Shown here: positions 8,047 to 64,000 of the stretch, one piece after another | Numbering within the stretch: position 1 is the stretch's first letter | How the letters are laid out: the number at the start of each line of letters is the position of its first letter | Source: Hydrolagus colliei | Taxonomy: Eukaryota | Length of the DNA: 64,000 nucleotides | Assembly: GCA_035084275.1 (NCBI GenBank) | Contig: CM068756.1 | Location: 14,384,001-14,448,000, forward strand | Reading direction: 5' to 3' | Translations under genes and position numbers: made by a program | Notes under the pieces: generated by a model | Told to the model about the DNA's origin: nothing | Seen by the model: the letters and a program-made list of their open reading frames with translations, nothing else | Databases searched by the model: none

Positions 8047-8150
8047 CTACAAAGACAACGATTAAAATCTGTGAAGCATTTCAAGATGTTTGTAGTTATA
8101 GGAGCCACAATAATAATTACAAAATCGGTCCATTGGTCATCCAAATGATT

Positions 8151-8459
8151 TGCCATCTGAGCCCGGCTGGAGATACTAATTCTCACCCAGTTTCCACCAT
8201 TCAACAGTCACAGCGGAATTATCAGAAGGGGAGAAAATGCACCTAAAGGTAACATTGGCAGCTATGATGACAACAGTGGTTTCAGGGGTTTGGGTCACTT
8301 TGAGGGGAACATCGGCAGCCACTGTCAAAGATAAATACAAACTTTATGTATATGTATTTAACAAATAATACAAAAATATAGATTAAGAGAACCATATGAA
8401 ATACCTGGGCCAATGGCAAGAATTACGAGATACAGAAACACAATCCGTTTGAAAATCAT
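8151..8459 (-). pseudogene. Psi-A: leader plus 5' half of a V exon of an internally deleted SIRP-like gene
   Basis: Leader 8405-8459 MIFKRIVFLYLVILAIGP|gt, followed by an 83-nt intron. V fragment from 8321 reads VAADVPLKVTQTPETTVVIIAANVTFRCIFSPSDNSAVTVEWWKLGEN*YLQPGSDGK (TAG 8176-8178), then jumps into intron sequence. Confidence 0.8.
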
Positions 8460-11320: not shown

Positions 11321-14300
11321 TTATGCGGTTGCTGTTTCCATGACAGTGACAGCTTTGTATTTCCTGATATTTACTTCCGCATACTCTGAATTCTTGCCGC
11401 TGGGTTTAGCTTTTCCTGTTTGTTTGGAGCGAGGTAAATCCAGATCAGCGTAGGTCAGCTTGTCAGGGGCGGTTCCTCGCTTGGTCTGAAAAAGAACAAT
11501 GTTTGGGATTGTCTTTTTGCTGGTTCCATGTATAGATGTACATAGAATGGTACGGAAACTGGACAGCCAGTGTTTATACTTCACACGACATCCATCCTTG
11601 CCTATTTTCTTCTGTTCCTCTCGAATCTCTTCTCATTTATGCAACAAGTTTTATGTTGATAGTAATGTTACATTATTGTGAACCCATCATCCCGTGGCCA
11701 ATTGGTAAATATAATTCAAACTGCGATATCCAGCTGCAGATTTAAGGGCTGTAGATCTCAGCGACGAGCTGCCAGCCACTTTCATGTGTTGGTCCAGATT
11801 GGTTATCGCTGCCATTCCTAATTGCTCTATGAAAAACTAACATCTCAGGACATTTGAATAGGAACACATGTGATCCTCTTTAAATTATTTGGTGAATTGT
11901 TGCTTCTTGTATAAAGATACAATCTTAGCAATTGATAGCCTGGAAATGCTCTTTTAAACTGATCCGTTTTATAAATTTCCTTTATCGTCAGATAATAAAA
12001 TGATATTAGGTAAATCCTGAAAGGCTGAACGCGTTCGACAACCAAACGCAGCATCCAAAAGTGTTAGAAGATTCGATGGGATGGGATGGGGGTGGATTGG
12101 GGGAACAAAATCAAGGACAAATTTGGTTACCTGGGCGTATACTGTCCTCTCTTCCTGGTGTTTAGCTCTTGTTGTTTTATTGGAACTTTTCAAATCCAAT
12201 GTTACATAAGCCACATTGTCGCCCTGTGCTCCCTCCCCCATCTGTAAAACAAAATATAGAGTTAAATGGTTCCTCGATTGCCTTCCTTAATCCGTACTCT
12301 TTGACCATGGTATTGAATCAGTAGGGATTTTAGAGGAAACAACGGCTGTCTTCAAGTTGAATGGTTAAAGACAGATAATATTCAGTAAGAAGATCGAATT
12401 CTCTCTAGAGGCAGTGAAATTCATGTTTCCAACTGAGGTTTTGCCATGTACCCCCAGTGAAAATGTATTGCTGATTAAATGGATCAAACAAGAATTCTCA
12501 CTTAAAGTATTATCATTTAAAACATGCAGTTCCCAGTCACAGGCCTGACTTGGAAGGATTACTAGAAAGGTAAGTTACTGCCAGCAAACCGTGTTTATTC
12601 AAGGAACAACTTAATCCTGAATTGGGAAATAGATAGGTGTATAATTATGTAGGAATGATGCTAAGCTTGGGAAGTTTTAGTCCATACTCCAATTAAACGT
12701 AAGCCTGTCTTGTTGTGATGGGATGAGATGTGAACGGTGTCCTGGCGAATCATAATCAAGATAACTTAGTGATACACTTCGACAGCAACAACAAAATTGC
12801 ACGTGTATAGCGCCTTTCACGTCAGGAGGACGTCCGCAGGCGCTGGACAGTCACTGCTTCAGACCCGAGCTGAGGACAGGGGTGGGGGAAGGAAGTGGGG
12901 GATTAGGATTTGCCCATGGGTCCATCGAAGAGAAGTGTCTTGAGGCGAGACTTGAAGGAGGCCAGGATGGGGGTGAAACGGAAGGACTGCGAGATGGAGT
13001 TCCAGAGGTTGGGGCAGAGTGGTTGAAGGCTCGCCCACCAATGTTGAGGTGGGTGGATCGGGGAACGTGGAGAAGGCCAGAGCCTGCTGAGCAGAGGGTT
13101 GGTTAGGAGGTCATGGATGTAGAGTGAGGCGAGGTTGTGAAGGGCTTTAAATATGAGCAGCAGGATCTTGAATTGGATCCTCTGGTCCACGGTTTATAGA
13201 ACCATATTGAGTGCAAATTGGTTGTAGCAAATAGAGTCGCTACAATGATAACGATTAGCAGCCGTGAAGACATTTGGAATTATAGGGGCCACAATGATAA
13301 TTACTAAATTACCATGGTATTGGAGGAGAGGGTAGGAGAAATGGATAGAATAATTATAATCAGAGAGGAAGTTCTAAAAAGGTTGACGTCGCTCAAGGTG
13401 GATAAGTCACCTGGTCCGGATGGGATGCACCCTAGGTTACTAAGGGAGGCACGGGAGCAAATAGCAGGGACTCTGGCCACGATCATTCAATCTTCCTTGG
13501 ACACAGGGGTCATGCCAGAGGACTGGAGGATAGCTAATGTTACTCCCTTGTATAAAAAGGGGCAGAAGGACAAGCCTGGTAACTACAGACCAGTCAGTCT
13601 AACGTCGGTAGTGGGCAAACTTCTAGAGACCATAATCAGGGACAAGATAGATCTTCACTTAGAAAGATATAGGCTAATAAAGGACAGTCAACATGGATTT
13701 GTTAAAGGCAAATCTTGCCTTACAAATCTGATATAATTTTTTGATGAGGTAACGGAATGGGTGGATAATGGTAGCGCAGTTGATGTAGTTTACATGGACT
13801 TTCAAAAGGCATTTGACAAAGTGCCACATGAGAGACTTATAAGGAAATTAAAGGCCCATGGCGTAAAAGGGACAGTGGCAGCGTGGATCCACAACTGGCT
13901 GCGAGACAGAAAGCAGGGAGTTGTAGTGAGCGGCTGTTTTTCAGACTGGAGGGAAGTGAGCAGTGGTGTGCCACAGGGATCAGTTTTGGGACCATTGCTG
14001 TTTGTAATCTACATCAATGATCTGGACTTGGGTGCACGGAGTACAGTTTCCAAGTTTGCAGATGACACTAAGTTAGGGCGAATAGTAAATAGTGAGGAAG
14101 ATAGTAGCCATCTGCAAGAGGATATAGACAAATTGGTAAAGTGGGCAGACACATGGCAGATGAAGTTTAATGCAGAGAAGTGTGAGGTGATGCATTTTGG
14201 GAGAAGAAATGAAGGGAGGCAATATAGGCTAGATAGTACAATTTTAAATGGTGTGAAGGAACAGAGAGACCTGGGGATTTGTGTTAGTGACTCATTGAAG

Positions 14301-17300
14301 GTGGCAGGACAGGCTGTTAAGAAGGCATATGGGATACTAGGCTTTATAAATAGGGGTTTAGAGTACAAAAGTCAGGAAGTGCTGACTAACCTCTATAAGA
14401 CTTTGGTGAGGCCTCAGCTGGAATACTGTGTTCAATTCTGGTCACCACATTACAGAAAGGATGTGAAGACATTGGAAAGGGTACAAAGAAGATTTACTAG
14501 GATGGTGCCAGGATTGAGGGACTTCAGCTATGAGGAGAGGCTAGATAGGCGAGGGTTATTCTCTCTGGAGCAGAGAAGATTGAGGGGAGACCTAATAGAG
14601 GTTTATAAGATCATGAGGGGTTTCGACAGGGCAAATAGAGAAAAACTATTTCCACTCGTGGGCGAATCTGTGACTCGTGGTCACAGATTTAAAATAGTTT
14701 CAAGGTGAAGTAGAGGGGAGCCGAGGAGAAATTTTTTCACTCAGCGAGTTGTTCGAATCTGGAATGCATTGCCTGAAAAGGTGGTGGAGGCTGATTCGAT
14801 AACAACTTTTAAAAGGGAATTAGATCTTTATTTAGGGAGAACAGGTCTATTAGGCTATGGGGAGCGGGCACGGCAGTGGGATTGAATCGCTCTTTTCAAA
14901 GAGCCGGCACAGACTAGATGGGCCGAATGGCCTCCTTTTGTGCCGTAAAATTCTATGAATCTACGAATCAAAATTGGTCCATTGGTCACCCAAATGATTT
15001 CGTAGAACCATAGAATCTTACGGCACAAAAGGAGGCTATTTGGCGCATTAATTCTGTGCCGACTCTTTGAAAAGAGCAATTCAATCCCACTCTCCAGCTC
15101 TCTCCCCATAACCACACAAGCCTCTCCTCCCCAAATAAACATCTACCTCTCTTTTAAAAGTTGTTATCGAATCGATAACAACTAATTTGGTGATACACTT
15201 ACCCAATCTTCAAGATTGCCTGATCGAGTCGGGTTTCCCTGTGATCCTAAATATGAATAAAATTTACTGAATTAAATATTTACTCATTCAAGGTTAACAC
15301 TAAAATAATATCTTGGTTCTACATTTTGGAATAAATGTAATGTCACGTAGAATCTCCACGTCACTCATTCTTTCTGAATATTCTGAACGCTGGAATTATT
15401 TCTGTTACTTATTTTAAATCTCAATATGGCTACACCTGACAAAGTATTCCTTAAATCTTTTTGTTTTTCATCTTAAGAAACTTACTTGTTTCCTGTACTG
15501 TGGGCTGCATCTTTATGCTGGGACTCAAAATAATAAAAACATATTTTCGATTTCACGCATGCAATATAATCTATAACCGAATTGTATTACTGATAAACGT
15601 TAACTTGGTTCTAGTCCCTGCATTTGTTTGAAGCCATTCATCACCACAGTTAATTACAAATGCACATAATTCAACGTGTTTTAAGCCGGTTGAAATATAT
15701 TAAGTCAGATTTCAGACATTGGGTGTTGGAAAATAAGAAATTCTGGGATATTACAGTTCACCGTGTGAAATTGTTACAGTACTGAATCTGCTGCAATAAC
15801 TACAAGGAACATTTTCTCTGTGCTATGCATTGGTGCTTTCTAAGGTTTTGTATCAATAAATAAAGTTTAGAATTAATTGCAATGAAACCATAATTTGCTT
15901 ACCATTTTTCAATTGGTATCGCCACAAAATTAAGATCAAAAGCAACAGAAATATGAACACACCCGCCGCACATCCACCCCATAGTGCGTATTCGATTTCA
16001 CTTGTATTATCTGGAGAAGTAGAGTACATGGAGGTGAAACTGTACATTGTGTAGAGGGACGATTTGTAGATTCAGTAGAATAAAAATTTTAGGCAGTTCA
16101 TTTGTAAATTATATCTTGCAGTGATTTCAAGTAATTATTAAGCACAGTATCCAGTTTTATCTATTATATCTAATACTAATCTGTGTATTTGTTGAAATAT
16201 GAATAAACATTACAAGGAGACCATCACTGAAAACAGTTTGATAGTAATGTAGGGAAATACGGGTGTAGCCAATGAATCCGCTCTCGTTTATTCTGATCAT
16301 GGCTCTTGGTTTTAATATGCAGGAGAGGGTGGCACACAGAATAATGAAATAGAACATTGATTTCCAGAGTAACCCTCACAAAATACAATCCATAAATTGT
16401 AGCGTAAGATGCTTGTACCTGTTGACATCTGATTGCAATGAACAGTGCTCATTTCCTAACAAACAAAAAGCAGGAACTTGATGGGATAAAAAACATTTGA
16501 TGATCAGGTGTACTGAGCTGCCCGAGGTTATCGGACACTACCATTTGGATAATATTGGTTCGGTTCAACAAAATACTTGATGATTCACGTAAAATCTTTC
16601 ACAATCAAACGGCATAATGTAGCTGATCACCATCATGCACCCTCATCACCATCTCAACACATTTGTCTCCTTTTAACTCTGGCATCGCTTCCTATCGCTA
16701 CAGGTCTCCCGGGAGAGAGAGACAGTCACATTCCATGCCTCAAGTCACAGGCAGGAGCTGCCGAACATTGGCTGTACCTCAGGGCTCAATCCCTGTTCTT
16801 CTGACCTTCACTATCTATATGCTCCCACTTGGCGACAGCATCCATAGACATGTATCGCATGTCCACAGAAATCAGGATCTTGCAAAGAAATGAATCAAAA
16901 TTGATTTTTTCCAGATGATTGATGAAATTAATATGATTTTCCTCCATTATCTGTTCTACAGTTCCCCCAACCCCACTGAGGATTTTCTGTAGGAATTCAA
17001 CTAAGCATTGGACAATTGTGTGTGAAACTACCGCGTTTTACCCAAAGGATTTCACCCTCACATGGTATAAAAATGGGAACCAAATTACACCAACATCAGG
17101 ATCTCCCGTCCTCCTCCACACAAAACATCCACCTTCAGCCCGATTAGTGTCAAACATCAAGTCTTTGATGAGCTCTGACTTTCTTCAGCTGAATAATAAT
17201 CATCTCTGCATTTTAGTTAGAGCCTTATATATCGAAATCAGTGATTAATATTATTACTACCATCTCGTTATTGTTGTCTCAAATTGCATGAGACAATTGA

Positions 17301-19253
17301 CTGAAAGGCGCTATACAAATGTATTTTTGTTATTGATTTTGTTAATCAATGCAACTAAGACAATTGAATTATCAACAGTTGACTTTTTAAAATTCAGTTA
17401 GCTTCTTACCTGCGTTAGGTTTTGGGATGGAATGTTTTGTGTCAGTGTAGGTGGCAATAGCTGCAGACTTCAGGCTGACGTGGGACACCAGACAAGTATA
17501 AACAGACGCTATCTGGACAGACTGTGTGTCTTCAATAGAGCTAGAGACCTTATAGAGTTCCCACGAGTTCTGCTTTTCTATGGTTACTGTCTCTTCCACC
17601 TTGATTCCTGATGTTGGTGTAATTTCGTTCCCATCTTTATACCATATGAGGGTGAAATCCTTTGGGTAAAACGCGGTAGTTTCACACACAATTGTCCGAT
17701 GCTTAGTTGAATTCCTAGAGAAAATCCTCAGTGGAGTTGGGGGAACTGTAGAACAGATAATGGAGGAAAATCATATTAAATTTCATCAATCATCTGGAAA
17801 AATTCAATTTTGATTCATTTCTTTGCAAGATCCTGATTTCTGAGAGCAAACGGAGGTTTCTTTAGATACACAAATATCACTCGCACAGCTGAAGATGCCT
17901 TCCTCCTACTTTAATTACTTTGTTGTTTGAACATTAATATTCAGTCATAATAATTGTCTTCAATAACATACGACGTATAATGATTAGCAGACAGAATTGA
18001 TCGCTGCAAACTCTTGAACAGGGGAGATAGTGGATTCCTGACAGGAATCAGCACACTGTGGTATTCTAGATCAATTGATAACATTCCAGCCTCTGAATTA
18101 GCGTGGCTTCATGCTCCACATCGGGACTTAGAATTCATATAGTCAACACTGAAACACCCGCTGCAATGCCATTCTTAGGATGAGAAATCAAATCTGGGAA
18201 CATTTGCGCTGCCTCCACTCTCCTGGGTCCGGCCTCCTGGTTGTCCCCAATCCTCCGTTCAACCATCGGCGGCCGTGCTTTCAGCCACTACCCGAAGCTT
18301 TAGAACTACCTCTCTCAACCCCTTCACCTCAACCCCTTCACCTCAACCCCTTCACCTCAACCCCTTCACCTCAACCCCTTCCTTTCCCATGTGCAGGTCG
18401 CGCCTGAAGACCTTCTGTTCGACGGCGCCTATGGCTTCAGCCTCGAGGCTCCGCCAGTCTGAAGCGCTCTGATTCGCTGCCCGGTATGGAGTGCGCTATA
18501 GCAAAGCCAGCTGTTGCTTTAACATTATTCGATAAGTGTGGTGAGTTGTACTATTTTGTGTTTTAGGTGTGCAGAGGTTAATTCTCACTTAATATACTGT
18601 ACTCTAAAAACTAGTGAACAAACTAGTATGAACAAACAATACGAAAAGCTTTAAAGCATTCACTGCATTTATTACTTTCTATGTAATTTTCAGGTGCTTT
18701 CACTCTTCACTACACACTCACCCTGCACAGTTAAACGTGATCCAGGTCCTGTTCCAATTCCTGATCCCTGACGGATCACTGAGCAGCGATAGACTCCAGA
18801 GTCCTGTAAACTCACATTCAGGAGCTGGAAGAAGCCGCTTCCTTTGCTTTTCACACCAAATGTTTTCCTGCTGTCCGCCTGTGTGTCCAAGTAGCCGTCC
18901 TCACCCTCCTTCTCCCACTTCACCTCCACTTCAGAACCGTGTTGAGAGAAGGGGAAGATACAGATGAAATTGATGTCTGACCCTTTGATGACAGTCGTAT
19001 GTTCGGGGTTTTGACTCACTATGACCGAAGAACCTTCAGGGACTGTCAGAAAAGAAAGTCAATCAATGATACATTAGATGATGCGTCGTGGAGTAAACAG
19101 ACGAGTAAAAGAGGAAAGGACCGTAAGTGTATATAATTAACGCAAAGAAACAAGCTTGCACATATTTCATAGAAGAACTAAATTATAGAGTAAACATATA
19201 CCTGTTAAAATAAAAGTTAAGACAGACAGGTACAGAAAGACAACGCTCCCCAT
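11321..19253 (-). CDS. G2: intact inhibitory SIRP-alpha-like V-C1 receptor (type-2 V), four-tyrosine tail
   Basis: Leader 19202-19253 (MGSVVFLYLSVLTFILT), V 18722-19042, C1 17410-17745, TM 15903-16010 (YALWGGCAAGVFIFLLLLILILW), cyt1 15203-15246 (GSQGNPTRSGNLEDW), exon A 12131-12241 (VAYVTL...TVYAQ), exon B 11321-11485 (LTYADL...SEYAEV...*). Phases are 1-1-1-1-0-0 and the frame is open. Confidence 0.88.
12785..13190 (-). mobile_element. L2-type LINE 3' fragment
   Basis: (CAA)n followed by tatagcgcctttcac tail. It is absent from the paralogous intron copy at about 7.03 kb. Confidence 0.7.
13305..14969 (+). mobile_element. 5'-truncated CR1 LINE, ORF2 reverse-transcriptase region
   Basis: ORFs 13314-13736 and 13761-14708 contain KSPGPDG, PEDW, NYRPVSL, DFQKAFD, GVPQGSVLGP and FADD. 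Stops fall at 13734 and 14706, and the tail is (TTCTATGA)-like. The pre-insertion site is preserved at 8120. Confidence 0.92.
15003..15170 (-). mobile_element. CR1 3'-end fragment
   Basis: Reverse complement of 14800-14960. Confidence 0.75.
16866..17101 (+). repeat. Inverted duplicate of G2 C1 acceptor region and 5' part of the C1 exon
   Basis: Reverse complement of 17606-17842 with about 8 differences by manual alignment. The ORF 17018-17248 CETTAFYPKDFTLTW is this copy. Confidence 0.9.
18170..18520 (+). mobile_element. L2-type LINE 3' fragment with an internal 14-bp tandem repeat
   Basis: L2 3' sequence, with aaccccttcacctc repeated about 4 times at 18317-18378. Confidence 0.65.
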
Positions 19254-20268: not shown

Positions 20269-21516
20269 TTACTTTGATCTTGGTTCCCTGACCACGGCTG
20301 CTCCTCCGTGGTTTCTCAGATGGAGCTCAGCTTACTCTGTATCATTAACGGTAGTCAAATTCAACGTGACATAAGCCACCATCAACTTCTCTGCTCCGTG
20401 CATCATCTTTTACAGATAACATGACCACAACAACAACACATTGTGTTTGTAGAACACCTTTATTGTTGGGAGTACATCGCAGGGCGCTGACAGATTGTTG
20501 GATTCGCTGTTCTACCGATCGCTGTATACGTACTCATCGTGATGCTGATAAGTTTAGAATACTTCAAATATTTAAGAAGGAAACTTACATATTTATTAAA
20601 TATGCTGTTAACAATTACATGACATCTCGTATTTCAGTGATACCCCCACCACCCGCTCGGGTCCTGACCAGACTGTTCAGTGCTTTGGGACGTCCTCCCG
20701 AAGCGAAATGTGCTATATAGGTGCAATTTTGTTGTCGTTGTTGTTGATACATTGGGATTGAATAATTGCATGTGGGGATTGCATTTAAAATGTTCTTGTT
20801 TGCGGTGAACTGTATCTTTCCATTTCAACAACTCTGTTTTCAGATTAAATATCTGCTGCAATATAATGTACCTATTCTTCGCAATGTCTCAATCCCTTCT
20901 GATTTCTGCTTGTGCCTTTGAAAGAAATTCATATTTTGCTTAGACCAAATGAAAAACGTTTCGAAGCTCACGAGCTACCAGAGTCTATATTTCTAAAAAT
21001 ATATATAAAAAGTTGTCATCTTGAATCAAACTGAGTTTACTTAGCGGCTAATCTAAACACAGATGTGGAGTCACAAAAATCAGACAATTGTGATAAATTA
21101 TTTTGCACTCATTCCTTTCAACGTATTTCCATCCACTGCCCCGCGCTCCCTGAAACTCCATCCAAGAGCCTCTTTCAAGCACATCCTTCAAAAGCTTTGA
21201 TGAAATAACCAATTAATAGCTTGTTAAGGGGATAAGATATCAAACCCAAAAGGTAGCCACACTTTCGGGGATTTGAGTCACTTTCACTGAAGAATCACCA
21301 GCAACTGTGAGAAGATCGTCAAACAATGATATCTTAGATAATGTGTCAATGGGAAAAGCAAGCGAGTAAAAGAGGAAGAAACATGAGTGTGTATGATAAG
21401 CAGCAGATGGAAACAAGCTTGCACACATTTCATAGAATAACTAAATTGTAGAATAAATGTATACCTGTTGAAATCATATGTAAGACAGAGAGGTGCAGAA
21501 AGATAACACTGGCCAT
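20269..21516 (-). pseudogene. G3: internally deleted chimeric SIRP-like gene lacking most of V and all of C1 and TM
   Basis: Leader 21465-21516 (MASVIFLHLSVLHMIST). V start 21256-21304 (VAGDSSVKVTQIPESV) is fused to the TM-cyt1 intron. Cyt1 20872-20915 ends in TAG. Fused A/B exon 20269-20406 reads MMHGAEKLMVAYVTLNLTTVNDTE*. Confidence 0.85.
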
Positions 21517-24040: not shown

Positions 24041-24804
24041 TGGATGTTTCAATCAGAGGTTTCTTGATAGGAAGTTTCTATTACTTGAATATCCAGTTGC
24101 ATTCATTGTTCGTATGATATTAATAAGATGTAACCATATATTTAGTAATTGTCTTGGGGACGTTGGGCTTCCTCAAACCCAAAGTCATAGGAATCCGCTC
24201 AGCTGCTTCTGCCCTCCAGTCTTCTCCCCCTTCCCTATCTCTTCCTCACACCCTGGACCATTCCCATCCCTCACTACACACCTTTGAACCTGTCACCCAT
24301 CCTCTCTAACCATCACTATAAACTCATATCTCCCAACAATCCTATCCTTAAATAGCCATCCCTGGATCCATTCCAGTCTCAATCAACTACCCCATCTCCA
24401 ATCTCCCTTTCTTCTCCAGGGTCCTGGATGAGTTGTTGGTTCCCAGCTTCACTTCTTCCTTTCCCACCACTCCCGTCATGAACCCCTCCAATTAGGTTTC
24501 CATGCTGCCCACAGCACAGCCCATGTTAATAATAATATTAATAATAATAATCATTGCATTTGATTTAGTGCTTTTCATGTATTCTAGACATCTCAAAGCA
24601 TATCACAGAATACACTGTAAAGTGAATTAAATGTATTTTTGTGAGCAAAACGCAGCAGCCAATTGTGCACAGCAGTGTCCCACAAACAATTGTGGATTGC
24701 AATGATCGATTAATTATTGTGTGTTTTTTTGTTATTGAGGGATTATTATTACGTGAGTGTGTGTGTGTGGAGTAAGGAAACTTGCCCAAGATTTCGCCCT
24801 GACC

Positions 24805-25377
24805 TTCTGTAGTGTGGTGACCAGAATTCAATTCTGGTCACCACACTACAGAAAGGATGTGAAGGCATTGGAAAGGGTACAACGAAGATTTACTAGGATG
24901 GTGCCAGGATTGAGGGACTTCAGCTATGAGGAGAGGCTAGATAGGCTAGGGTTATTCTCTCTGGAGCAGAGAAGATTGAGGGGAGACCTAATAGAGGTTT
25001 ATAAGATCATGAGGGGTTTCGACAGGGCAAATAGAGAAAAACTATTTCCACTCGTGGGTGAATCTGTGACTCGTGGTCACAGATTTAAAATAGTTTCAAG
25101 GCGCAGTAGAGGGGAGCTGAGGAGAATTTTTTTCACTCAGCGAGTTGTTCGAATCTGGAATGCATTGCCTGAAAAGGTGGTGGAGGCTGATTCGATAACA
25201 ACTTTTAAAAGGGAATTAGATCTTTATTTAGGGAGAACGGGTCTATTAGGCTATGGGGAGCGGGCAGGGCAGTGGGATTGAATCGCTCTTTTCAAAGAGC
25301 CGGCACAGACTAGATGGGCCGAATGGCCTCCTTTTGTGCCGTAAAATTCTATGATTCTAGGATTCTGATTCTATGAT
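24805..25377 (+). mobile_element. CR1 3' fragment inserted in a SINE, with a 24-bp fold-back at its 5' junction
   Basis: Near-identical to 14435-14960. It is flanked by SINE halves (24560-24804 and 25378-25425). Confidence 0.88.
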
Positions 25378-30166: not shown

Positions 30167-33100
30167 TTACTTGGATCTTGGTTCCCTGCAGATAGCGGCG
30201 GCTGCTCCTCCATAGTTTCTCTCATGGAGCTCTGCATACTCTGCATTCTTAATGGTACTTTTAACTTTTCCTGTTTTATTAGAAGGACAAAGATCCAGAG
30301 AGGCGTATGTCATCTTGTTCTCCGTTGCCCCTTGCTTGGTCTGTAAAGGCAATAGTTGAGAATTTATTTCTATTAATTTGTTTTCAGTCTTCAGAAATCT
30401 CCTCAAATATGCAGCAACACTTGCCTCATAACTCATTTGATGAAGTCACTCTTTTAAAGAACTGAGCCAAACAGAATGTAGTGGCGACAAATTCTGTTAC
30501 GAACAGTTAGAAAAGAGCAGTGAAAACAATGTATGAGTTTTTTATTGATCTACAGAAATGTGGGATGTATATTTCCATATATAGTTGATGTCCTCAGTGC
30601 CTCATAAATTGACACACAATAACTAGTCTTATACAAGAAAACAAATTATTTGGCTGTACAGTTAACCCTTGCCGTACATGGGGGTTACGTTTTTGGAACA
30701 CTGCACACTCGGTAAAATTGCGTTGGGTAAGCTTAACAAGTAATGGGAAAAGGGGGTTTAGGGGAATCCAGCCACAGGCTACCCACCCCAAGCCTCCAGG
30801 CACATCCACACTTGACCACCACCAACAACAACAACGTCAACAATAACAATTTATATAGCGCCCTCCACGCCAGACGGCGTCTCAGAGCGCTTCACAGTAG
30901 CGGATCCCGGGACCGAGCCAGGAGCAGGGGCAGGAAGGTGACCAAAGGTGACGAAAAGTTCGGTGACCAAAAGCTCGGTGACCAATGCAAGGTACACACT
31001 GAGGTGGACAACAGCCGGCTAGCACGCTCTCCCCGCTCTCATTTCTCTCCCCACTCTCCCTGCTCTCCCCACTCTCGTCACTCTCCCTGCTCTCATCGCT
31101 CTCCCTGCTCTCCCTGTTCTCATTGCTCTCCCAACTCTCCCCGCTCTCATCGCTCATCACTCTCCCCACTCTCATAGTAGTCCAAGGCCAAGGAATCATC
31201 AGCCTCAAACTCCATTGAAGTGGATGCTTGGGGAGAGGCAGAAGTGGATGGCCGAGAAGATGCAGCAGCAGGTAAGTGTCAGCGGATGACTGCTGAGACA
31301 AACTGGCAGGTTGAAAGAAGGAAGTGATTTTCCGTTGTTTTGCCTTCCACTAGAAGTCTTTCATGAGCTCCCTGTAAGGCCCTAAGAGGCCATCCAGACC
31401 TGTTTTAAATTTCAGACTCCTTTCCATTATAGGGTCCATCTCCAAGCTTGACCTCCCAAGTGTGCATTGCGCGACCGGCATCCTCCCCAGTGCGAATGCG
31501 CGCGGGGTCAGCCAGCACTTTGCAAGTTTTACACGTGTTACACAAAAGAGTGATGCATTTTTTTCTTCTCATATAGTTGAATTCGCAATCGAGAAAGTTG
31601 TGTTTAGCGATGGTTAACTGTACACTGGCAGGTTGTTGCAATCATACCACAGCTCAGGACAGTGCCGAGAGTGAAGATCAGAGGAGAAAGAAAGATTAAA
31701 CGTAGACTAAGAAGAACAGCAAAATTGCACTTGTAAAGTGCCTTTCGTGATGGGAGGATATGTCAAGGCACTAGACGGTCTGTTTTAGACCCGAGCTGGG
31801 GTCGGGATCGAGGGGGGTGGAGGGAAGGGAGGGGAGTGGTGGGGGCATCATTGAAGCAGAGGTTCTTGATGCGGGACTTGAAGGAAGCTAGGGAGGGTGC
31901 GAGGCAGAGGGATTGCAGGATGGAATTCCAGAGTTTGGTGGCAGAATGGTTGAAGGCTCACCTGCCAATGGGCAGGCGGGTAGGTCGGGGGACACAGAGC
32001 AGGCTGGAGCCCACTATGTGGAGGGAGCGGACAGGTTGTTAGTGAGTTACAAGGTCACAGAGGTAGAGTGGTGTGAGGCCATGGAGGGCTTTAAAGGTGA
32101 GTACCAGGATCCTGAATTGAATCCTTGGGATGATGGGGAGCCAATGGAGTTAGGCCAGAATGGTGGCAATGGGGTCAGGGAGCTTGATTTGGGAGAGAAC
32201 AGGTGCTGCAGAGTACTGGATGATCGCAGCCTATGGAGGGAAGAGTTAGGAAGGCTGACAAGCAGAGCGTTGGCATAATCGAGGGAGGACGAGAACAGTG
32301 CAGATGGTAACTGCTGGAGTTCGGAGGGTGACGTGAGATACCAGACAGGTATAAACAACTCCGCTCTAAACGGATTAACCCTGGAATATGGGCTGATTAG
32401 GATATGCAGCACCACTTACCTCATAGGTCATTTGGTAATGCCACTGCTCTTTCCTGAACTTAGCCAAACAGAATTCAGTGGCCACAATACTGTTCGGAAT
32501 AGGTTAGAAAAGAAAAGTGAAAATCAACCCAAGATGTGCATTGACCTACAGAAATGTCTGTGTGTATCTTGTTGGTACATACTTGATATTCGCAGTGTGG
32601 CATAGATTGACACACGCAATAAAGCAGAAGAATAAATATTTCACTATACAGTGGCAGACTGTGGCCACCATATCACTGGAAAGCACCAGAGAGTGAAGAT
32701 TAGAAGAGAAAGAAAAATTAACCGTATTATATTTGCTATATATCAAATGCCAGGATTATTACTAGTATTAACCACAGGAATAGTACAAACTGTCTTACAG
32801 TGAGCACTGAAGTTAGTTCCACTCTATTTACTGAAACAATTTTGTATTTCTCAGATATACCTGAGCGTACACTGTCCTGTCCTTTTGTTTTTTAGGTCTT
32901 GGAGGTTTCTTAGAACTGATCAAATTTAATGTGGCATAAGCCATCCGCTCATTCTCTGCTCCATGCATCATCTAAAAAACAAAACGTGATCACAACAAGA
33001 ACAACATTGCATTTGTACCTTTCACGTAGGGAGTACATCCCAGGGCGCTGACAGATTGTTGTCTTCACTGTTCTCAAGATTGCTGTGTAAGTACTCATCA

Positions 33101-56110: not shown

Positions 56111-59100
56111 TCACATTTATAATATGTATATTATCAGGAACAATATGTTTTTAAAGCTGAAAAACAGAGTTTAGGAAGCTTCATTCTCTCCAGTTTAACA
56201 TCATCTTTAGGCTTCACCATTGTTTGGAATCTAATGAAAAGCACACGGAAAACCAAAATGATCTTTGAATCAAACACAAAGATTTTAATTATTTAATGTT
56301 TATTGCATCTATTTGTGCATGGCAATATCACAGAAGCAAGTATGAAGTCACTGGCCAATTTTCCCCAGAGGACACACTTCAGTATAAGAGTAATGCTAAG
56401 ATCTTTAACTTACACCTGACCAGGCAGCCTGGATAAGAACAGCAACTTGCATACATACATATTATATGTTAACATGGGAAGCATCTCCGAGCATCTTGAA
56501 CTTGAGCATTCTCAAGGCTGAGACTGATAGATTTTTTTTAAATAGAGGGATTAGGGGATATGGGTATAGGGAAGGTAATTAGCGTTAGGTCAGAAGGTCA
56601 GCCATGATCTTATCGAATGCCGGGGCAGACTCGAGGGGCTGAATGACCTACTCCTGCTCCTAATTCTTATGATCTTATGTTCTAACTGCACCCACAACAA
56701 GGCAAAGAATCCCATTACAACACCCTAGAATATGAGCAGCAATCAGTAGAAGTGAAACATATGTACGTTCTGGAGGGTTAGACTATGTATGTTTTGAGCG
56801 CTCTAACAACTGAGTAACAGGGCTCCACTAATTATTAGAAACAGGAACCCTGCATTGAACAAGAGGCCACATACATACTATTTAAAGGTGAAACCCTGAA
56901 AGTTCACTCAGCAAAAAGACGAACAAGGAGTTGTTTTCTTTTTGTTTTCCAAACTACAAAGAGTGTAAATAAACTGTACTTGAATAATATGTTTAACGAA
57001 GGAAAGGAATGATGCAGAAGAAGGTGACATTATTCCGTCTGATGGCAATCATGTGTTCTGAGACTTTGACTGAAAAATCACCAGTAACTATCATAAAAAA
57101 TAACAAGAACCAGATTGCTACAGTAAAATACACACCCACCACCACCCAACCCCATGATTCTGATCAATTTTGACCTGATGGTCTGTAACACAATGACTTG
57201 CAACAATGCTACACAGATGTTTTACCCACAGAAACTTCTGTGTCATTTGACTTCCTGTCTTTGAGGGTTCAGGAAATTGAATTTGAGTTGCAAGTGCAAT
57301 TTGTAAGGAAACGTGATCACGAAAGCTATGACGAGTTAACCCAATCCGTTGGTCGCACATCTAGCCTTCATGGCAGTATTCAAACTCATGTTGTGTACGG
57401 AGGGATGCTGGGGTTGACTGATACCAATTTGGTGGATCATCACATCTTCAGATAGTTCCATACAGCTATTGATAGAAACCAATAGGCAACAAAATAATTA
57501 GATCCATCTTCACGGATATCACGGATATCTATGTAATTATTTTTTCTTATCTGGGTGTCAAATCCATGCAGAAACCCATCACCATGTTTAAGATCCCACA
57601 AAGTAAATTAAGAGTTCCATGCATCCCGATTTGGTGTGGAAATTCCCATGTATTGGGAATAGATCCTCTCCCTTGCAGGGAAAAATCCTGTTTAGCTAAT
57701 CCTAGAGAGTATTAATAACAGGCAAAAGCCAAGTTCTGGGGACTCTAGTTTGCCATTTAACAATTGACAAAGGCAGGTTTTAGCCCTCACTTGGTGGACA
57801 TCAGGTAGCAACACCTCCCTATGAAAGTCTTGGTGGGCATCACTGCTCAGTGTGAAATGTTTGATATAGACTCAATTACTCTGCTCACAGTTTGGATAAG
57901 CATTTAGCGATGAGAGTGCAGTGGGAGAGTGACATAGAGAGGGGCAGAGAGAGCGGCTGTGAATGGCAGTGGTGTTGGGGATGGGGTGGTGTTCACAGAA
58001 TGAGAGAGAGCCTGAGAGCGTGAGAGAAAGAAACAAGAGTAAATTAGGGAGCACAGAGCTTAGGGATTCAGAGTTGGAGAGAGTGTGTGTGTGTAGGGCT
58101 GGAGTCCCTTCAAATCGCTCCTTCCCTCGTCTCTTTCAAGGCACATGAAGAACTCTTTGACTGCCATCGTTTCCTCTCCCCAACTCCTCCCTTGTCTTAC
58201 ATCCCTAGCTCAGGTGCTCAGCCAGGAATGTCAGCGGTTTGACATCCCCACTTCCCCGAAAAGGGTACTTGTGTAAACGTTGTTATGTATATTGAAGTGT
58301 AACACACATATATTACATATACAGCCTACAGATGTTTCTTAAATAGGGCATTCAGTGCTGAACAGCCAAAAGGCTGGACCAACCTGTCCTAGAGTATATG
58401 AGTTCCAAGTCCCCATATGGAGCTTGAATCTAAAAACTTCTAACTCAGAGGTGAGGAGTCTTCCAAATGAGCCAGACTGATGCACTATATTTGGTTCACT
58501 TCACACTCCTCAGCAGACTTATTTGAGCTATTTGGATGTATTTTTAAAATGAACAACATCAAATCATAACAGGACTCAGTGACACATGCTAAGCCTGTAT
58601 GGATAAAAGCTTAAATAAGAGGTAAAGATGCTTCATTCTCTACATGGTAACATTAGTTTCATGTCAAACTCTAATGAATAAAATCAACAGAGATCTGAAC
58701 GCTCTGGGGCTAATGAAGTGGGTATGAGGGGGTGGGGGGAATGGGGGGGTGGGGGGCGTGGGATGGTTCTGCTTTTTTTAAGCATTATAGGATACCATTG
58801 AAGAAGTCAGAGTTGGAGTGGGAAGGAGGAATAAAGTGGCAAGCAACCAAAAGCTCAGGGTTACACTTGCGAAAAGAAGCGAGCTGTGCGGCAAAGCGAT
58901 CTAGGTTCCAATCTAGGTTTGGTCTCAACGACCAGAGATGATGGATTCAAAACGTGTTGCTTCAAGAACAAAGTAGATACATTAATCATGAATAATAATA
59001 ACTCAGGATATCAGGATACAGTACTGTATATAGTGACGCAACATGTCAAGCGACTGCCAGGATAGTGAAAGGCGACCTGATGGACCTTGGTCTTCTTTCG

Positions 59101-62364: not shown

Positions 62365-63894
62365 CTAAGATATTGTTTCATGTTGTTCCAGACACCTGGA
62401 TATTTGGAGGAGATATCTTTATATCCACTGATTATTAGAGAATCCTCCAATATAACAAATTGTCATGTCCACAATCTAAACAGTCTGGTCCCGGTTAGCA
62501 GCGAACAACATAAATTTGATTCCTGTTGATTGATAATTTTATGGGCTACGATACAAATACAATAATGTGAATCAAATCACAATATTATTTTGAAGCAAAG
62601 AATGCCTCCTTACCTTTCAAGTTGTGAGATTTTAACATGGTCAACAATGAAGATGGTCAACACTATCACTACCAAGAAACAGGATATATACCGTGAAATC
62701 ATCATATTCTCTGACATTCCACGATAACCTAGAAAACAAATATTGGAATGCAAAAGGATTTACATGGAAACTATTCAATAATTAGGCTTTATTGGGAAAA
62801 TGCACACGTTCTTAACTATTTTCTATTGGAAGCTACAATGAGGTGGAGGAATATTATAAACTGTGCATTCAATTGATTGAAAACAGTAGAGAATAGCAGT
62901 GAATACCAATGCACAGGCAGTTTATTAGTGCTGTTTTAGAGATGTGTTTATATATTATGTGGTAATAGTTCCCCTGAGACTGTGTGCTCAACTTCAAATG
63001 TACCAGAGAGAATGACTCTTCAGACCCAAGCTGTGGCCACTATCGTAATCAAAACTGATTCCATTGGACATCTACTATTAAACTGAATTTCTTTAAAACA
63101 TCTCACAAAAGAGTTTTATTTTAATTACGGTGATTTTTGTTCCAAAGGAATAAGTAACAAAAGGTTTGTTCAAAAAATTAATCAGAAAATTCAATGGATT
63201 GATTAACAAATATTATTTGTTTCATTTGTACGTATGTATTAGTCCAAAAGTTTGATTTCTGATTTCAAACCTAAATATAGGTGGGGAGAGGACTATTGCA
63301 GGACTATTGCAGTTTGGCATGTTACTAAATGCCACAAAAGTAATGAACTTATTTGAAGGGAAGATATTTAGAATTTAATGGATAAACAAGAAATACTCAG
63401 ATCTGAGATATTCTTCGATTCAAAGACTCTACATTTATAGTTGCTAGTTTTGTATATATTAAGTCTACAGCGGGAAGATTGGATGCCTACAAATGGTGGC
63501 GTAAATAAATGTAAATATATTTTCTAGTAGCAAGGTGTTAAACAACAAAAGACTGCAAAACAAGTAGGCATCCTACCTTCCAATGCTGTGTACACTTTAG
63601 GAACAGTGTAGACGGCAACCACTGGAGATTGGAGGGGGACGTTAGATGCCAGACAGGTATAAACAACACCGAACTATACAGGTTGTGTGTCTTCCATATA
63701 GCTAGAAACTTCATAAAGTCCATCTGTATTCTTCTCTTCAGTAAAATTTATCCCAGTTATAACTTCACTACCTTTATTCCAAGTGAGCGTTGCACCGTCG
63801 GGGTAAAACGCAGCCGTTTTACACACAAGAATCTGAGATGTTGATGAATCTCTTTCAGAATCTCTGGGGAATATCCGCAGGGGGGTCGGGGGGA
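62365..63894 (-). pseudogene. G6 (3' part): activating-type SIRP-like receptor with Arg in TM and a nonsense codon in C1
   Basis: C1 63577-63894 has an in-frame TAG at 63674-63676. TM exon 62614-62728 reads GYRGMSENMMISRYISCFLVVIVLTIFIVDHVKISQLE. A candidate last exon 62365-62395 gives RCLEQHETIS* (uncertain). V and leader lie beyond the window. Confidence 0.75.
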
Positions 63895-64000
63895 CTGTAG
63901 GACACACATTGGAGTAAAATCGCGTTACTTGTGATTACTTGGAATATAAAACTTTATTCCCATTATTGTTGTTGTCCGAACAAGTTGTCTGGATTGTAAC

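Follow-up and report, generated by a model that had tools for sequence, protein, structure and literature searches.

G2, a new member of the predicted SIRPα-type inhibitory receptors of cartilaginous fishes, encoded in a tandem gene cluster of Hydrolagus colliei

The G2 gene, its tail and its cluster

We analysed a stretch of 64,000 nucleotides from Hydrolagus colliei (assembly GCA_035084275.1, contig CM068756.1, positions 14,384,001 to 14,448,000; hereafter the window). It contains a tandem cluster of minus-strand genes for receptors of the immunoglobulin superfamily (IgSF). One of these genes, G2, encodes a cytoplasmic tail with four tyrosine motifs that resembles the tail of SIRPα, one of the major checkpoint receptors of the "don't eat me" type. 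G2 adds a new member to the predicted SIRPα-type inhibitory receptors of cartilaginous fishes. The likeness to SIRPα is real for the two-tyrosine unit of the tail and for the overall plan of the protein (a V domain with a J motif, a C1 domain, a transmembrane (TM) segment and an inhibitory tail), while the arrangement of four tyrosines was probably reached by separate duplications and not inherited as such. Coordinates below are those of the whole window, features lie on the minus strand unless stated otherwise, and residue numbers refer to a protein model of 378 amino acids. The window has a GC content of 40%, is eukaryotic and contains no runs of N.

Assembled upstream from its tail exons on the same strand, G2 consists of seven exons, all joined at GT-AG junctions into an open frame of 378 codons. 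Exon 1 (19202..19253) encodes the leader MGSVVFLYLSVLTFILT, starts with an ATG and ends in phase 1 at a gtatat donor; the paralogs have similar leaders. Exon 2 (18722..19042), bounded by canonical ag/gt sites, encodes a V-set domain (Pfam V-set, E 2.2e-8) with the J-like end GTGPGSRLTV. The family consensus of this end is GNGTGSxLxV, and G2 fits the SIRP-type pattern G-x-G-(T/S)-x-L-x-V, with V in one exon. The sole C1-set domain (..VYTCLVSHVSL..; Pfam C1-set, E 1.4e-9), predicted with confidence in the structure model, is encoded by exon 3 (17410..17745). Exon 4 (15903..16010) contributes a stalk, the TM segment YALWGGCAAGVFIFLLLLILILW, which has no charged residues, and the stop-transfer sequence RYQLKN, as judged from a hydropathy scan, the splice sites and a predicted helix at residues 240-271. 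It is followed by a membrane-proximal mini-exon of 44 nucleotides (nt) (exon 5, cyt0, 15203..15246) encoding (G)SQGNPTRSGNLEDW, which was located by a search for ag/gt sites and phase scored against annotated relatives; counterparts lie at 33295-33252 and 48925-48882 in the window, and also in Callorhinchus milii. Phases are consistent throughout, with the Ig and TM exons in phase 1-1, the mini-exon leading from phase 1 to phase 0, and the first tail exon in phase 0-0.

No second C1 domain was found between the V and TM exons of G2, and the C. milii ortholog likewise has one. The only other C1-like sequence near the C1 exon is an inverted partial copy on the plus strand (16961-17215), located in the intron between the C1 and TM exons and 55% identical to the C1 of G2 over 87 residues. 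The intron between cyt0 and the first tail exon holds long open reading frames that by their look resemble reverse transcriptase of a long interspersed nuclear element (LINE; 13308-14705, plus strand), a truncated second copy of which lies at 24757-25278. The gene is about 8 kb long, against about 5.5 kb for the C. milii ortholog (locus L002), whose exon plan is the same down to the mini-exon and the two tail exons. An AlphaFold (AF2) model built on a 14-sequence family alignment predicted both Ig domains with confidence, a helix for the TM segment and disorder in the tail. G2 is thus an intact gene for a type I membrane IgSF receptor with a signal peptide, a V domain with a J-like motif, a C1 domain, an uncharged TM segment and a tail of about 110 residues.

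The tail is encoded by two exons separated by an intron of 645 bp. Exon 6 (cyt1, 12131..12241), bounded by ...ttttacag and gtaacc, encodes MGEGAQGDNVAYVTLDLKSSNKTTRAKHQEERTVYAQ and carries the first tyrosine unit, with Y299 in VAYVTL (12214-12197) and Y322 in TVYAQ (12145-12131). Exon 7 (cyt2, 11321..11485), preceded by ...ctttttcag and starting in phase 0, encodes TKRGTAPDKLTYADLDLPRSKQTGKAKPSGKNSEYAEVNIRKYKAVTVMETATA up to the stop codon at 11323-11321 and carries the second unit, with Y336 in LTYADL (11458-11441) and Y359 in SEYAEV (11389-11372). The spacing of the four tyrosines is therefore 23, 14 and 23 residues. These peptides of the minus strand are exactly those that the original prediction had read, with the right coordinates, exon break and 23-residue gaps; its exons are real, as attested by paralogous copies in the window and by the exon plan of the C. 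milii ortholog. Pfam matched no family on the tail exons, and only the Ig domains on the full G2 protein. Three of the four motifs, which form two pairs (VAYVTL and TVYAQT, LTYADL and SEYAEV), fit the consensus [SIVL]xYxx[IVL] of the immunoreceptor tyrosine-based inhibitory motif (ITIM). The second does not: with T at +3, the Y322 site fits neither the ITIM nor the switch-motif (ITSM) consensus, the equivalent in SIRPα being TEYASI, and its binding partner may differ from that of the other three tyrosines. By its predicted motifs, G2 has the general make-up that defines an ITIM-bearing inhibitory IgSF receptor, with three canonical ITIMs.

Across the family, Y299, Y322, Y336 and Y359 are invariant or almost so and the spacers are variable. 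The most conserved block of the family tail, ERTVYAQ followed by TKQG, spans the cyt1/cyt2 junction (12131-12145 and 11474-11485). Comparison of G2 with its C. milii ortholog showed two, or by another count three, of the four tyrosine cores to be identical and the rest to differ by one residue each; judged from this comparison, constraint on the tail between the two chimaeras appears only weak overall.

G2 shares the window with genes B, C and E and a partial gene A, the paralogs in the window numbering four or five. Gene B comprises a V exon (54898-54581), a C1 exon (52936-52643), a TM exon (51594-51505) and a tail region (48925-47726) in which cyt1 (48514-48404) and cyt2 (47899-47726) are paralogous to the tail exons of G2. 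The same holds for cyt1 (32971-32861) and cyt2 (30340-30167) of gene C, the corresponding exons of which lie within 40088-30167. Gene E (leader 5435-5385, V 5203-4886, further exons 2833-2564 and 2277-2161, tail exon 552-412) has only one tail exon, a hybrid that reads MIPGAENEAVAHGWLNWTPVNNTE up to a stop and in which Y1 is replaced by H and the Y4 codon of the paralogs by the stop. It has no tyrosine motif whatever and an uncharged TM segment, and could serve the inhibitory copies as a decoy-type partner. Between G2 and gene C lies a relic mini-gene (20272-21516). It retains a leader at 21516-21463, 16 residues of a V domain (21311-21264) and a piece resembling cyt0 (20916-20875), and closes with a hybrid tail exon (20406-20272) that reads MMHGAEKLMVAYVTLNLTTVNDTE and then a stop. 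As in gene E, a cyt1 head is fused to a cyt2 end and the stop falls at the Y4 codon. Further exon relics are scattered through the cluster: at the upper end of the window a C1 exon interrupted by an in-frame stop (63605-63895), a V exon with a stop (8140-8328), a C1 fragment in a gene C intron (32309-32497) and a V fragment (57002-57103). These relics are signs of birth-and-death turnover. Neither the window nor the C. milii locus (±10 kb) contains anything but family members and repeats.

A full-length profile search recovered 39 chondrichthyan relatives at E<=1e-74. The nearest database proteins are from C. milii (60-76% identity, none identical), and relatives were found in Heptranchias, Heterodontus, Scyliorhinus, Chiloscyllium, Stegostoma, Mobula, Hemitrygon, Hypanus, Narcine and Pristis. 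The family is thus present in chimaeras, sharks and rays. Many members are already called SIRPα-like in the automatic NCBI annotation, where other names include SIRPβ1-like, tapasin-related-like, CD276 homolog, NCR3LG1-like, Ig lambda-like, TCRβ-like and MHC II α-like; this inconsistency is a first hint that no stable nearest neighbour exists for the ectodomain. As no description of SIRP-like genes in cartilaginous fishes was found in the literature searched, the G2 family, although annotated, is apparently undescribed.

Tail, ectodomain and introns compared with SIRPα

The original prediction had compared the G2 tail with the motifs of human SIRPα, which it gave correctly: the tail of a bat SIRPα (P0064) reads ITYADLNL..TEYASI..SLTYADLDM..SEYASVQVQRK. 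Its spacing of 24, 17 and 26 residues is similar to that of G2 and not identical, as the prediction had implied. The LTYADLD peptide, which had been put forward as a mark of homology, does not serve as one. Its D is unique to G2 among ten family tails, the others having S, A or T, and the C. milii ortholog reads LTYAALDL at this position.

In order to search with the tail alone, ten chondrichthyan tails were aligned into a profile (A1), which was run against 1.84 billion representative proteins, without a word filter and with a cut-off of E<=1e-3. Of the 53 matches, about 35 were members of the chondrichthyan family. Eight were amniote SIRPα proteins, with E values from 8e-9 to 6e-4: the short isoform of a bat SIRPα, P0040 (8e-9), P0044 and camel P0045 (1.2e-7), and bilby P0058, corvid P0060, P0062, bat P0064 and bird P0068 (5e-5 to 6e-4). 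No other mammalian or bird protein, and hence no other mammalian ITIM receptor, matched at this cut-off. The search also returned six teleost proteins (P0047, at 1.9e-7, P0052, P0056, P0057, P0059 and P0061), in which the tail is carried by receptors with multiple Ig domains of C2/I-set-like type. The last four matches were the secreted bacterial protein P0042 (1.4e-8), the metagenomic P0063, P0066, a BID-domain effector of a Bartonella type IV secretion system (T4SS), and the crinoid Ig protein P0067. An earlier word-indexed tail search yielded 23 candidates, of which only two C. milii orthologs passed, and was uninformative on distant relatives.

Scored on A1 as tails only, SIRPα reached 38-57 bits. 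Comparable values were obtained with the bacterial P0042 (56 bits, and 51-56 across scorings), the teleost tails (34-46 bits), the crinoid P0067 (41 bits) and the Bartonella P0066 (41 bits), whereas the tails of sixteen other human ITIM receptors, the sequences of which were entered by hand, gave 0-17 bits (Siglec-7, CD33, PZR, CLEC12A, BTLA, LILRB1, PECAM-1, PD-1, CEACAM1, PILRα, LAIR1, G6b-B, KIR2DL1, CD300A, CD22 and FcγRIIB). P0042 is a protein of 163 amino acids (locus L004, 6001-6492, contig CAXWUM010000012.1) with a start resembling a signal peptide and two units of the form xVYAxLDL..(21)..TVYATI. Its gene neighbourhood is bacterial (MutS, MutL, PI-PLC and radical-SAM genes, the PI-PLC gene adjoining), and from its motifs it looks like a mimic of the tails of host inhibitory receptors. 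P0067 (Anneissia japonica, a feather star, XP_033117483.1) has two Ig domains and a tail in which LTYADLDL..TEYSSV occurs twice. Smith-Waterman alignment of the G2 tail with SIRPα tails gave z-scores of 10-14.5 against full shuffles, a similarity well above the level of chance, and still 3.4-5.3 when the four six-residue cores were kept fixed and only the spacers were shuffled; P0042 and a tilapia tail gave results equal to those of SIRPα. The SIRPα tails of P0064 and P0060 in turn matched PF15330, the Pfam model that describes SIT, an unrelated adaptor (E 2e-6 and 1.4e-4), another sign that tyrosine-motif tails cross-match between families.

On these scores, the G2 tail is of a specific SIRPα type and not a generic ITIM tail. 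To that extent the original prediction that this is no generic ITIM holds, A1 separating SIRPα (38-57 bits) from the sixteen human receptors (below 18 bits). However, SIRPα-type tails also occur in proteins that cannot be SIRP orthologs. Since bacterial and unrelated fish proteins score equally, common ancestry with SIRPα is possible and a tail score is insufficient for it. Equal scores with unrelated receptors, which the prediction itself had named as evidence against homology, were thus found among teleost, bacterial and crinoid proteins and not among the sixteen human tails.

The two units of the tail were then compared with each other and with those of SIRPα. Exons cyt1 and cyt2 are paralogous, cross-matching in tblastn at E values of about 1e-3 to 1e-5, and the profiles of shark units 1 and 2 score about 25 bits against each other. 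Four relatives (P0008, P0015, P0021 and P0023) have three units. Together with the hybrid cyt1/cyt2 exons that occur in the window, this indicates that tail exons duplicate and recombine readily. When A1 was split into its two units and the SIRPα units from six amniotes were scored, both SIRPα units scored best on shark unit 2 (18-26 bits, against 7-19 bits on shark unit 1). Shark unit 2 is about equally distant from the SIRPα units and from shark unit 1, and no unit-to-unit correspondence was seen.

The original prediction had also pointed to intron positions in tetrapod SIRPA, which were examined here at two bird loci (L001 and L003). They agree with G2 in part. The TM exon of bird SIRPA is in phase 1-1 and at L003 ends in a split Gly codon as in G2 (at L001 it falls in an assembly gap), and a phase-0 exon starts shortly before the first tyrosine, 8 codons upstream in bird SIRPA and 11 in G2. 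As these shared features are common in IgSF receptor genes, they carry little weight. After the TM exon, bird SIRPA has two mini-exons of 22 and 40 nt and a single phase-0 terminal exon with all four tyrosines, whereas G2 has one mini-exon of 44 nt and an additional phase-0 intron between Y2 and Y3. This distinctive intron between the units is not common to G2 and bird SIRPA. Taken together, unit scores and intron positions suggest that the tail was doubled in two ways, in the shark family through duplication of an exon and in SIRPA inside a single exon. The two-tyrosine unit itself may be ancient.

The ectodomain gave no clearer link. In a phmmer search of PDB, the C1 domain of G2 matched IgM Cμ2 (1e-13), SIRPα d2 (6.5e-10), UrIg2 (1.4e-9) and SIRPγ (3e-9). 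The idea suggested by this ranking, that C1 is specifically SIRP-like, was dropped after per-domain scores, a tree and topology tests. On the family C1 profile, SIRP d2 and d3 scored 34-46 bits per domain, against 54 for human Ig λ, 51 for MHC II β2 and 46 for Ig κ (sequences entered by hand). In a maximum-likelihood tree of C1 domains, the chondrichthyan family formed one clade (support 97/99) whose placement among SIRP d2, SIRP d3 and Ig constant domains lacked resolution. Approximately unbiased (AU) tests rejected none of the groupings of the shark family with SIRP d2 (p 0.39), SIRP d3 (p 0.36), both (p 0.34) or the Ig light-chain constant domain (CL; p 0.37). SIRP d1 scored 12-25 bits on the family V profile, and no SIRP was found among the PDB matches of the V domain in single-sequence or profile searches. 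PDB profile searches with the V and C1 alignments were discarded as a ranking of SIRP, being swamped by the summed scores of titin, contactins and Ig heavy chains. Foldseek placed the G2 model nearest to Ig light chains and TCR β chains. SIRPα did come next after the chondrichthyan proteins in the full-length profile search (129-173 bits, followed by a large gap), a rank that it owes to having two C1 domains and the tail. As far as these scores and trees go, V and C1 have no specific affinity for SIRP. The C1 tree neither favours nor rejects it, so that the exclusion of SIRP by an ectodomain tree, which the original prediction had contemplated, did not occur, and support for SIRP did not emerge either.

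Explanations of the four-tyrosine tail

We consider it rather likely that G2 is a SIRPα-type inhibitory receptor within a birth-and-death cluster, that its tyrosines form pairs suited to docking SHP phosphatases, and that its four-tyrosine layout arose separately from that of SIRPα. The tail consists of two paralogous phase-0 exons, each providing an ITIM-type tyrosine and a second tyrosine 23 residues further on. By analogy with SIRPα, PECAM-1 and PZR, engagement of a ligand would lead Src-family kinases to phosphorylate the tail tyrosines, each doubly phosphorylated pair could then dock the tandem SH2 domains of SHP-1 or SHP-2, and the phosphatase so opened would damp nearby activating signals. 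The doubling would have proceeded by exon duplication in the shark family and inside one exon in SIRPA.

Several observations weigh against this reading. Y322 is non-canonical, so that the first pair may not bind tandem SH2 domains in the classical way. The ratio of nonsynonymous to synonymous substitution (dN/dS) of the tail between G2 and the C. milii ortholog is 0.69, with a dS of 0.20 over 91 codons. The unit profiles are short (37-42 columns), and their result might stem from unit 1 of the shark family having diverged faster once an ancient duplication had taken place. The SIRPA lineage could also have lost an intron that once separated its units. The full-length ranking was biased by a word pre-filter, Ig light chains never having been candidates although their C domains score higher per domain.

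A second explanation, to which we give clearly less credence, is pure convergence: the tails would have no common ancestry, the same partners (Src-family kinases and the SH2 domains of SHP-1/2) having shaped both by selecting [ILV]-x-Y-A-x-L, some 22-26 residues, [ST]-x-Y-A-x-[VIL], basic spacers and tandem repetition. That such a tail can be reached independently is suggested by P0042 (51-56 bits) and the Bartonella effector P0066, which match SIRPα scores, by the double LTYADLDL..TEYSSV of the crinoid P0067, by the match of SIRPα tails to the SIT model (2e-6) and by the missing one-to-one correspondence of units. Bacterial mimics may, however, copy such host tails, and are hence no proof of convergence between host tails. 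Shared partners alone do not force the similarity either, as PECAM-1, PZR, BTLA, PD-1, Siglecs, LILRB and KIR remain below 18 bits (sequences entered by hand), and similarity extends outside the six-residue cores (z 3.4-5.3).

Somewhat less probable still is that the family members are true orthologs or co-orthologs of SIRP, the whole four-tyrosine tail having been inherited from the jawed-vertebrate ancestor. SIRPα is indeed the sole mammalian and bird match of the tail profile, and all four of its tyrosines fall into a single collinear alignment (profile positions 5-79 with SIRPα residues 420-503). The plan of a V domain with a J motif followed by C1 is the same, TM exon phases agree, a phase-0 intron precedes the first tyrosine by 8-11 codons in both, SIRPα d2 is among the best non-immunoglobulin PDB matches of the G2 C1, and the AU tests leave a C1 clade of shark family and SIRP standing (p 0.34-0.39). 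Against this, non-orthologous proteins reach equal tail scores, the exact LTYADLD match hinges on a D found in G2 only, the units do not correspond one to one, and the intron between them is missing from two bird SIRPA genes. G2 has one C1 domain and not two, Ig CL and MHC II β2 equal or exceed SIRP C1 on the family profile, and V reaches only 12-25 bits with SIRP d1 and finds no SIRP in PDB. Neither the tail-profile nor the full-length search returned a bridging SIRP from amphibians, lungfish or ray-finned fish.

Exon shuffling appears improbable. Here the phase 0-0 exon with two tyrosines would be a mobile cassette spread among unrelated Ig receptors (the shark family, the teleost LITR-like receptors and perhaps SIRP), the tails being homologous and the ectodomains not. 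The unit exon is symmetric (0-0) and occurs in two to three copies within the family, hybrid cyt1/cyt2 exons in the window attest to recombination, and teleost receptors with C2/I-set domains share with the shark family both the linker ..VYAxVKxGAxxxxLxYAxI.. and a Y2-Y3 spacing of 14 residues, unlike SIRPα. In bird SIRPA, however, the units are not separate exons, and a unit tree from sequences this short would not be reliable. Finally, it is very improbable that G2 is a decaying or unexpressed copy with a functionless tail, despite the relics of its cluster (among them the C1 exon with an in-frame stop at 63895-63605, the V relics and the inverted C1 fragment at 16961-17215), the LINE-like sequence in another of its introns and the tail dN/dS of 0.69, because all seven exons are open with canonical splice sites, the tyrosine cores are largely kept in the C. 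milii ortholog and that ortholog is annotated with the same structure.

With separate duplication of the four-tyrosine layout as the preferred reading, the family is a possible cartilaginous-fish counterpart of SIRP. That it represents the ancestral single-C1 form of the SIRP family we advance only tentatively, as a doubtful proposition. If it were true, inhibitory signalling of the SIRP type would go back to the base of the jawed vertebrates, perhaps along with a CD47-like axis of self-recognition, and non-rearranging V(J)-C1 receptors with SHP-recruiting tails would stand close to the stock of the antigen receptors. The original prediction had placed the origin of SHP-recruiting tails before the divergence of cartilaginous from bony fishes. 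This is very probably true, and was already to be expected because ITIM receptors exist in teleosts and invertebrates; for the SIRP lineage in particular, the G2 locus does not prove it.

Known systems compared

The evolutionary origin of SIRPα is, to our knowledge, poorly documented. For comparative immunology, the present data add a family of V(J)-C1 receptors, encoded by multiple genes in each of the groups chimaeras, sharks and rays, with a tail that is the closest to that of SIRPα among vertebrate receptors and that is assembled from duplicable phase-0 exons. They also call for caution: bacterial mimics and unrelated fish receptors reach a tail similarity this strong, which alone is no basis for calling SIRP orthologs.

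Among known receptors, SIRPα (SHPS-1, PTPNS1) resembles G2 in being a type I protein with an N-terminal V domain bearing a J-like motif, C1-set domains, an uncharged TM segment and four YA-type tyrosine motifs in two pairs. Both have motifs of the forms xTYAxL[ND]L and [ST]EYAx[VI], and in both the TM exon is in phase 1-1 and the first tyrosine is closely preceded by a phase-0 intron. SIRPα differs in its two C1 domains (d2 and d3), its tyrosine spacing of 24/17/26, the hydrophobic residue at +3 of Y2 and, in bird SIRPA, the location of the tyrosines in one exon. PECAM-1 and PZR (MPZL1) also have two tyrosines about 22-26 residues apart, as in the pairs of G2, with a single pair against two in G2, and give 9-12 bits on the shark tail profile (sequences entered by hand). 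In SIRPα, PECAM-1 and PZR, phosphorylation by Src-family kinases allows docking of the tandem SH2 domains of SHP-1/2, activation of the phosphatase and inhibition of activating receptors.

The multi-Ig inhibitory receptors of teleosts of the LITR/FcR-like type (Siganus KAM3590527, tilapia LOC102081169) have a repeated tail like that of G2, in which an ITIM is followed after about 22 residues by xVYAxVKxGA and after 14 residues by xxYAxI. These tails score 34-46 bits on A1, and the 14-residue spacing between Y2 and Y3 is common to shark-family and teleost tails, unlike SIRPα; their ectodomains are strings of C2/I-set-like domains, whereas G2 has V and C1. The bacterial P0066 and P0042 repeat xVYAxLDL, about 21 residues and xTVYAxI (41-56 bits on the shark tail profile) and have neither Ig domains nor a TM segment, showing that this type of tail occurs outside the receptor lineage. 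From the side of the ectodomain, UrIg, UrIg2 and other non-rearranging V(J)-C1 genes of cartilaginous fishes share with G2 an unsplit, germline-joined V exon with a J-like end followed by C1. UrIg2 (PDB 9dmx) matches the C1 of G2 at 1.4e-9 with the single sequence and at 1e-33 with the family profile. The 9dmx chain, named V-C1-C2-C3, has more constant domains than G2, and the UrIg papers examined mention neither ITIMs nor SIRP. G2 is therefore set apart from UrIg by its domain number, its TM segment and its ITIM tail.

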